From positions 128,898,001 to 128,962,000 of the forward strand of contig NC_042997.1 of NCBI RefSeq assembly GCF_006345805.1: a DNA stretch of 64,000 nt, given 5' to 3'. The notes under the pieces were generated by a model. It saw nothing but the letters and a program-made list of their open reading frames with translations. It was not told where the DNA came from and did not search any database. Shown one piece after another: positions 1,598-59,950 of the stretch (the first letter of the stretch is position 1; each line of letters begins with the position of its first letter). The position numbers were made by a program, and so were the translations under genes. The DNA comes from Octopus sinensis. Its lineage: Eukaryota.

Positions 1598-1775
1598 AAC
1601 CAGAAAATTTCTTAATAGTAGCAGATCTAAATACACTTAAGCTAAAGGCCCTTGATGACCATCTTGATTCCAAGGTCCATATACTTCACTATGGCCATGC
1701 AGACAGCAGCTATGTTGCATTGGTTTACAATGATTTAGATAAAACCCTGTTTTGGAGTGATCTTCATGAAGGACA
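1598..1775 (+). CDS. Exon 1 in window: start of YWTD beta-propeller ([10 protein letters not shown]...LFWSDLHEG)
   Basis: Acceptor atttcag|, donor |gtaagt; phase 1 to 2. Confidence 0.88.

Positions 1776-59950: not shown

Follow-up and report, generated by a model that had tools for sequence, protein, structure and literature searches.

Does a locus of Octopus sinensis that reads as an LRP-type propeller running into an SVEP1-type stalk encode a receptor assembled in that lineage, two neighbouring genes wrongly joined, or a member of a wider animal family that goes under other names? YWTD-propeller receptors (LRP4, LRP5/6, LDLR) have key roles in the biology of Wnt, agrin and lipoproteins. SVEP1 (polydom) is a secreted protein in which HYR and ephrin-like modules stand alongside VWA, pentraxin and long sushi arrays. 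The original prediction for the 64,000-nucleotide stretch analysed here (the window) saw both kinds of module in one spliced frame and took the product for a lineage-specific shuffled receptor. We find good support for a different placement: the product is a type I membrane glycoprotein of an old, unnamed animal family. By analogy with known receptors, it is probably processed by furin into two chains and carries its propellers on a glycosylated stalk. Membership of that family and the two-chain mechanism, taken together, we judge somewhat better than an even bet.

Exons were found as stop-free stretches of the + strand with extracellular-module sequence, which were then linked via splice sites. 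Fifteen exons between 1598 and 59950 form one open frame of 1,022 codons ending in TAA, and all 15 exon borders have the form AG...GT (Table 1). Their number and coordinates are those originally predicted. Exon 1 begins in phase 1, so that further 5' exons must lie upstream, outside the window, as had also been expected. It is well supported that the window holds the 3' two-thirds of a single gene, from propeller 3 onward.

Table 1. Features of the gene in the window, with the evidence for each
Feature	Position	Strand	Evidence
Exon 1, first YWTD propeller blades (family propeller 3)	1598..1775	+	AG/GT, frame, tblastn P0001/P0002/P0004
Exon 2, propeller blades, LYWTG motif	5687..5923	+	Splice borders, frame, tblastn
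Exon 3, propeller blades, single Pfam Ldl_recept_b match (residues 140-181)	11097..11287	+	Acceptor inspected directly, tblastn
Exon 4, final propeller blades	18825..19031	+	Splice borders, frame, tblastn
Exon 5, propeller-closing EGF, 6 Cys, phase 1-1	20195..20314	+	Weak Pfam FXa_inhibition/EGF
Exon 6, second EGF-like module, EGF_3-like, 6 Cys, phase 1-1	26476..26619	+	Pfam, phases
Exon 7, first ephrin-receptor-like (TNFR-like) Cys-rich module, phase 1-1	28519..28665	+	Pfam Ephrin_rec_like E=2e-6
Exon 8, Thr/Ser-rich mucin-type linker, 63% S/T	30265..30426	+	Composition, alignment
Exon 9, divergent HYR domain 1	41962..42225	+	Pfam HYR E=0.04, AF2 (A. hians orthologue)
Exon 10, HYR domain 2	43837..44076	+	Pfam HYR E=3.9e-14
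Exon 11, degenerate sushi/CCP-like, 6 conserved Cys, without Trp	46525..46728	+	hhalign, AF2
Exon 12, first half of alpha/beta domain: beta1-alpha1-beta2, cleavage loop, beta3	49426..49678	+	AF2, alignment
HRYKR codons, predicted furin-type multibasic site, beta2-beta3 loop	49620..49634	+	Orthologue alignment, AF2
Exon 13, second half of alpha/beta domain (alpha2-beta4) and start of next Cys-rich module	55216..55403	+	Alignment, AF2
Exon 14, second ephrin-receptor-like module, phase 1-1	57175..57327	+	Pfam Ephrin_rec_like, residues 850-896, E=4.6e-15
Exon 15, juxtamembrane segment, TM helix 59606-59668, 93-residue tail, stop 59948-59950	59568..59950	+	

Comparison with relatives supports this model along its whole length. 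The closest relative is P0001 from Argonauta hians, recorded as 'LRP6-like isoform X2, partial' (1,599 aa). A second is the RNA-derived P0002, which is a cuttlefish protein judging by the Sepia (Acanthosepion) pharaonis fragments in its 90% cluster. Searching the window by tblastn with P0001, P0002 and P0004 recovers exactly the 15 modelled exons in their order, with no match elsewhere. From end to end, the spliced protein aligns at 92.6% identity to P0001 and 68.6% to P0002, each time with one indel (2 and 9 residues, respectively) inside the mucin run. Neither global alignment has a gap at an exon junction, which corroborates all 14 junctions. End-to-end alignment combined with ungapped junctions lies far beyond what chance would produce.

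Exon structure follows module structure. Each module from the first EGF to the sushi, and again the last ephrin-like module, is a single exon between phase-1 introns. All introns that bound whole modules are in phase 1, those inside the propeller are in phases 2, 2 and 1, and a single phase-2 intron interrupts the alpha/beta domain directly after strand beta3. One-module exons with phase-1 flanks are the classic signature of exon shuffling, and the phylogeny of the family makes this shuffling ancient.

Full-length relatives give the complete architecture. Read from the N terminus, they have a signal peptide and three YWTD propeller-EGF units, followed by an additional EGF, a Cys-rich module of ephrin-receptor-like type and then the mucin linker; after these come two HYR domains, a degenerate sushi, the alpha/beta domain, a second ephrin-receptor-like module, the TM segment and a short tail. 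Pfam finds in the window's spliced protein two Ephrin_rec_like modules, HYR, Ldl_recept_b and weak EGF-type matches. The domain order originally proposed is borne out by Pfam, AF2 models and orthologues, with two amendments: its 'sushi' is degenerate, and its 'SEA-like' segment is an uncatalogued alpha/beta domain. Pfam Ldl_recept_b, a propeller HMM (matching residues 1-269) and a tree identify the window propeller as the family's third. Among PDB sequences, the propellers best match those of LRP2, LRP4 and LRP6. Both EGF modules have six Cys, and their Pfam EGF matches are weak in the window and stronger in the cuttlefish orthologue P0002. The mucin linker differs in length among orthologues.

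Structure models were built on the A. hians orthologue (92.6% identical overall), not on the window's own spliced protein. For the HYR1-HYR2-sushi region, the A. hians sequence and 16 aligned orthologues gave a model with a pLDDT of 90.3, in which two confident beta-sandwiches (HYR1 and HYR2) are followed by a small beta-rich module with a C-terminal helix. Foldseek matches it mostly to tandem cadherin/Ig folds and does not resolve the sushi. The Pfam match of HYR1 is marginal in E-value yet covers the full model length in a piecewise scan. HYR is found by Pfam in 16/16 orthologue segments, and Owenia has two HYR stretches. On Pfam PF02494 and the modelled Ig-like beta-sandwich, HYR1 and HYR2 both classify as HYR domains.

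The next module is more diverged. At the sushi position the window has no Pfam match to PF00084 and lacks the invariant Trp, and only 1 of 16 orthologues has a Pfam Sushi match there. When the mollusc and annelid module was compared by hhalign with seven Pfam-verified sushi repeats from orthologues, the two aligned with 75% probability (E=2.5e-5) and their Cys in register. Six Cys are kept across phyla; the Trp is kept in deuterostome and cnidarian members and lost in molluscs in the alignment. We call the exon 11 module a degenerate sushi on the basis of this profile comparison.

SEA domains and the Notch HD share a beta-alpha-beta-beta-alpha-beta topology and are cleaved in the beta2-beta3 loop. 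The segment after the sushi resembles both in its model, being juxtamembrane, of the same topology, and with its predicted site in the same loop, as in the S1 furin site of Notch. The AF2 model of the A. hians orthologue has beta-alpha-beta, a disordered loop and beta-alpha-beta (pLDDT 89.5, pTM 0.81). Pfam matches the domain in 0/20 members, and profile search finds no relatives among PDB sequences. Foldseek returns only generic ferredoxin-like folds at E about 1e-3 (uS10, M20 dimerisation domains), with no SEA and no Notch HD in its top 50. The family domain also differs from SEA and Notch HD in having four conserved Cys of its own and no GSVVV; the G/SVVV autoproteolysis motif is absent from the loop, which has a multibasic convertase-type site instead. 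We dropped the assignment to SEA, given that Pfam and PDB sequences yield nothing and Foldseek only generic matches. Going by the model, the most apt description is a juxtamembrane alpha/beta domain of SEA-like topology that has not been catalogued. P0191 of Haliotis rufescens has the domain twice: residues 1080-1225, which match the family profile at E=3e-21, are an additional copy that follows the first ephrin-like module and precedes the mucin region.

The multibasic motif follows the fourth conserved Cys. In the window it is HRYKR followed by Ser, and cleavage is predicted after the final Arg and before that Ser. By manual count a multibasic site occurs in 17 of 22 orthologue segments, from molluscs to cnidarians, and in the alignment it is present in 16 of 20 rows; other members have HRYRR, KQRR, RNRR, RRKRKKR, RKKR, RMKR, RSKR, RRRRR or TRRKR. 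The loop is the sole stretch of the juxtamembrane model with pLDDT below 50. Since all four conserved Cys are N-terminal to the basic site, the chains would be held together after cleavage by their shared sheet and not by a disulfide. Cleavage is not universal, because the basic site is missing in heterodont bivalves (P0199 from Mya, P0195 from Mercenaria, P0196 from Ruditapes) and also in P0197. These members have an extra Cys in the loop, which suggests that cleavage was lost there or switched to a disulfide-stapled loop.

The TM segment (residues 909-929) is followed by a 93-residue tail with the motifs APPPFP (59750-59767) and YEDI (59825-59836). Exon 15 is 99% identical to its A. hians counterpart, and 34 of 37 TM and juxtamembrane residues are identical between the window and Patella, whose orthologues are overall only about 43-46% identical to the cuttlefish protein. 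An acidic tyrosine motif recurs as YEDI in molluscs, YDQI in Lingula, YAEI in amphioxus and YDEI in the hemichordate; mollusc tails additionally hold YVAPPP. At 59580-59690 of the window, the TM helix and its flanks (IPAIDEMSK...QYQRQQ) are almost invariant across molluscs, and outside molluscs the sequence is unrelated. Such near-invariance hints at a lineage-specific partner within the membrane.

These features lead us to a mechanism, drawn by analogy. The three propellers would form a ligand-binding head, as in LRP4/5/6, and the O-glycosylated linker with the HYR-HYR-sushi rod would keep that head away from the membrane. During secretion, a furin-type convertase would cut the exposed HRYKR loop between beta2 and beta3, leaving a mature receptor of two chains joined non-covalently by the shared sheet of the juxtamembrane domain. 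This arrangement would follow the logic of SEA and Notch S1 and would permit regulated shedding. The tail motif Y(E/D)(D/E)(I/L/V) may couple to clathrin adaptors or, when phosphorylated, to SH2 proteins. LRP1 is cleaved by furin into two non-covalently associated chains, and the family resembles it in being of LRP type and in its predicted furin cut, which falls in the part of the ectodomain close to the membrane; it differs in the domain context of the site, in being a far smaller protein and in having no LDLa clusters. As a whole, from head and stalk to furin cut and tail coupling, the mechanism is tentative.

The main rival to the receptor reading is a shed adhesion or matrix role. The protein would then be chiefly of SVEP1 type, its ectodomain released into the matrix by the furin cut and its membrane stub a by-product. 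Like SVEP1, the family has HYR, sushi-like and Ephrin_rec_like (GCC2/GCC3) modules together on a single extracellular chain, and such modules, like the mucin linker, are characteristic of matrix and adhesion proteins. Directly outside the membrane-proximal modules lies the conserved basic site, and cnidarian members have long sushi arrays. However, a disposable anchor would not be expected to keep its TM segment and tail as the best-conserved part of the protein among molluscs, or to retain the tyrosine motif from molluscs to the hemichordate. The family further differs from SVEP1 in its propellers, TM helix and conserved tail, and its bilaterian members are without a long sushi array; Pfam finds no VWA or pentraxin in the window protein, P0002 or P0004. 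We consider a mainly matrix role unlikely. More speculative, and in our view a long shot, is an elaboration of the receptor reading in which a eumetazoan family was lost in vertebrates and insects, for that reason escaped study, and has a juxtamembrane domain that acts as a furin-primed switch, like the Notch negative regulatory region. Binding of ligand or pulling on the stalk would then separate the chains and lead to proteolysis of the stub or signalling by the tail.

How old and how widespread is the family? We built a profile from six members and inspected the best 120 of its 881 matches. In these, the combination of Ldl_recept_b, HYR and Ephrin_rec_like without LDLa occurs in molluscs (Haliotis, Bradybaena, Batillaria, Argopecten, Mercenaria, Ruditapes, Mya, Patella, Sinanodonta), an annelid (Owenia), a brachiopod (Lingula), a cephalochordate (Branchiostoma), a hemichordate (Glandiceps) and cnidarians (Nematostella, Acropora, Montipora, Stylophora, Oculina). 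The pieces of the window protein match relatives in the same order, and the HYR-HYR-sushi and sushi-to-TM alignments are colinear across phyla. In cnidarian members, three or four propellers precede HYR repeats and the same C-terminal module, and there are long sushi arrays. The claim of a lineage-specific receptor thus fails against colinear orthologues in gastropods, bivalves, an annelid, a brachiopod, amphioxus and a hemichordate, and against the cnidarian C-terminal module. One cnidarian model, P0200 of Oculina patagonica (3,532 aa), has two sets of three propellers and five ephrin-like repeats, and is either a tandem duplication within one gene or a fusion of neighbouring genes in the model.

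Among the same best 120 of 881 matches there is no vertebrate or arthropod member; all such matches are ordinary LRP1/2/4/5/6 with LDLa and without HYR. A vertebrate or fly orthologue, which would have counted against the original prediction, does not appear among them; a chordate one does exist, in amphioxus. Absence of the family from vertebrates and arthropods is suggested but not proven by these 120 matches. An HMM of the C-terminal module covers the window protein fully and, at E-values from 1e-40 to 1e-88, matches molluscan and cnidarian members outside its training set over its own full length; among the sequences searched it matches no LRP from a vertebrate or an arthropod. In a phmmer search of 1.84 billion representatives with P0003, a truncated ORF called from a relative's RNA contig, multi-HYR proteins dominate, and only Patella and Sinanodonta give full C-terminal coverage among the 150 matches listed. 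A region-restricted search with the Owenia C-terminus, subject to a word-index limit, matched only itself.

The age of the mosaic was addressed with a quick maximum-likelihood tree of 53 single propellers. Propellers 1, 2 and 3 of bilaterian family members form three separate clades (SH-aLRT 100, 100 and 99), each of which includes spiralian, amphioxus and hemichordate members. The window propeller falls in the position-3 clade (99) with those of Sepia, Haliotis, Owenia, Lingula, Branchiostoma and Glandiceps. Such position-specific clades place the shuffling before Bilateria. Cnidarian propeller 1 groups with the family propeller 1 clade (88), and the tree does not resolve cnidarian propellers 2-4 as orthologues of any in Bilateria. 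By these groupings, the mosaic is probably older than the cnidarian-bilaterian split.

Database names point elsewhere. The orthologue is 'LRP6-like' in Argonauta and 'LRP4' in Sepia, and that of Branchiostoma is named LRP1-, 2-, 4-, 5- or 6-like in different records; the expectation that similarity pipelines would mislabel the gene as an LRP was therefore sound. There is real likeness to LRP4 and LRP5/6, which are also type I membrane proteins with tandem six-bladed YWTD propellers, each closed by an EGF. In contrast to them, full-length bilaterian members of the family have three propellers and not four, and a long stalk of mucin, HYR, sushi, alpha/beta and ephrin-receptor-like modules stands between propellers and membrane. 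LDLa (PF00057) is found in no family member of the profile search listing, nor in the window protein, P0002 or P0004, and in all true LRP4/5/6 matches of the same listing (best 120 of 881). The same script that finds three PPP(S/T)P motifs in LRP6 finds none in the window or orthologue tails, and it finds one NPxY in LRP4 and none in the window tail. Set against the core LDL-receptor family (LDLR, VLDLR, LRP1/2/4/8), the protein shares the propeller followed by EGF and lacks the LDLa repeats and NPxY.

A divergent orthologue of LRP5/6 (Arrow), the Wnt co-receptor, could be read from the NCBI names 'LRP6-like' and 'LRP5-like' and from the presence of LRP6 E1E2 among the best multi-propeller PDB matches. 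Propeller count, LDLa and PPP(S/T)P all contradict this reading, as does the tree, in which the family propellers fall outside the LRP4 and LRP5/6 clade (97). Moreover, a separate LRP4-like gene exists alongside the family member in amphioxus, a hemichordate lineage and an octopus. We rejected LRP5/6 orthology, which is now very improbable. In line with the original prediction, literature searches turned up neither a characterised protein nor a paper in which the domains stand in this order; nor did they yield a description of a protein with both YWTD and HYR, or an experiment on any member of the family. One source lists YWTD and HYR domains, in different proteins (PMC7853314).

Whether the two halves are one transcript can be read from RNA of relatives. 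The cuttlefish protein P0002 (1,757 aa, signal peptide to stop) is encoded without interruption on intronless RNA contigs of 5.6-6.2 kb from several public sequencing runs. Because the orthologous codons occupy 58 kb of the window, the contigs can only represent spliced mRNA. A further RNA contig, L003, begins at the end of propeller 3 and reaches the HYR domains by way of the EGFs, the ephrin-like module and the mucin linker, all in one frame. No transcript split at intron 8 was found, and the RNA contigs of relatives are continuous across the mucin-HYR junction. The architecture is thus expressed as one mRNA in relatives, and the window model itself comes from genomic sequence.

Contig L003 (run SRR27666085) has an in-frame TAA at 552-554, between the mucin linker and HYR1, where P0002 has Glu; apart from it, one continuous frame runs from propeller 3 to the tail. 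This stop accounts for the truncated ORF call P0003, which starts at GTG. Just one sample shows the stop, which may reflect an error, an allele or some other cause.

Two annotations divide the locus into two gene models: CAE1322106.1 ('LRP4') and CAE1322105.1 in Sepia pharaonis, and XP_055955256.1 and XP_050396212.1 in Patella vulgata. Given the continuous RNA contigs, both divisions are annotation artefacts, and they mark where annotation pipelines break the locus. That an LRP-like gene and a neighbouring HYR/ephrin-like gene were wrongly merged across intron 8 has next to no probability: this intron is the longest (11.5 kb), the two annotations divide the locus and the L003 stop falls at precisely this junction, but the full-length open frame stands on intronless contigs from several runs, L003 is still one transcript in one frame, the fused domain order is kept across phyla, exons 8 and 9 share intron phase 1 and their junction is ungapped against P0001 and P0002 alike.

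As a whole, the window is eukaryotic DNA rich in AT and laden with repeats. Pfam matches none of ten intronic ORFs taken from both strands, so we see no hint of a nested gene. Short interspersed repeats of two families (about 110-330 nt long, with 61-88% likeness), which look SINE-like and many of which have (ATT/ATC)n tails, lie in introns at about 4811, 11660, 13933, 20903, 31820, 47143, 47409, 54251 and 54481, and also at 7381, 8429, 17904 and 51078. A 1 kb (TA)n/(TATG)n microsatellite in intron 2 (6040-7040, GC 27%) scores as long direct and inverted repeats. In intron 8, adjacent open stretches at 35450-36670 on the + strand are a candidate retroelement ORF tail (...NRPDIILKD...), with no Pfam match.

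The window gene itself is ordinary, intact and already predicted, and is no cephalopod novelty. The family to which it belongs is a further, deeply conserved branch of YWTD-propeller proteins, with a different stalk and tail, that has so far gone unnoticed. The probable reason is that vertebrates and flies seem to lack it and that its members are automatically named LRP1, 2, 4, 5 or 6. Calling these genes LRP5/6 or LRP4 would distort inventories of the Wnt pathway in molluscs, annelids, brachiopods, amphioxus, hemichordates and cnidarians. The family also provides a clear example of a phase-1 gene structure, with one module per exon, that is old and not recent, and it brings a new extracellular domain with a conserved, predicted convertase-type site. 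Both the family and its juxtamembrane domain merit description.
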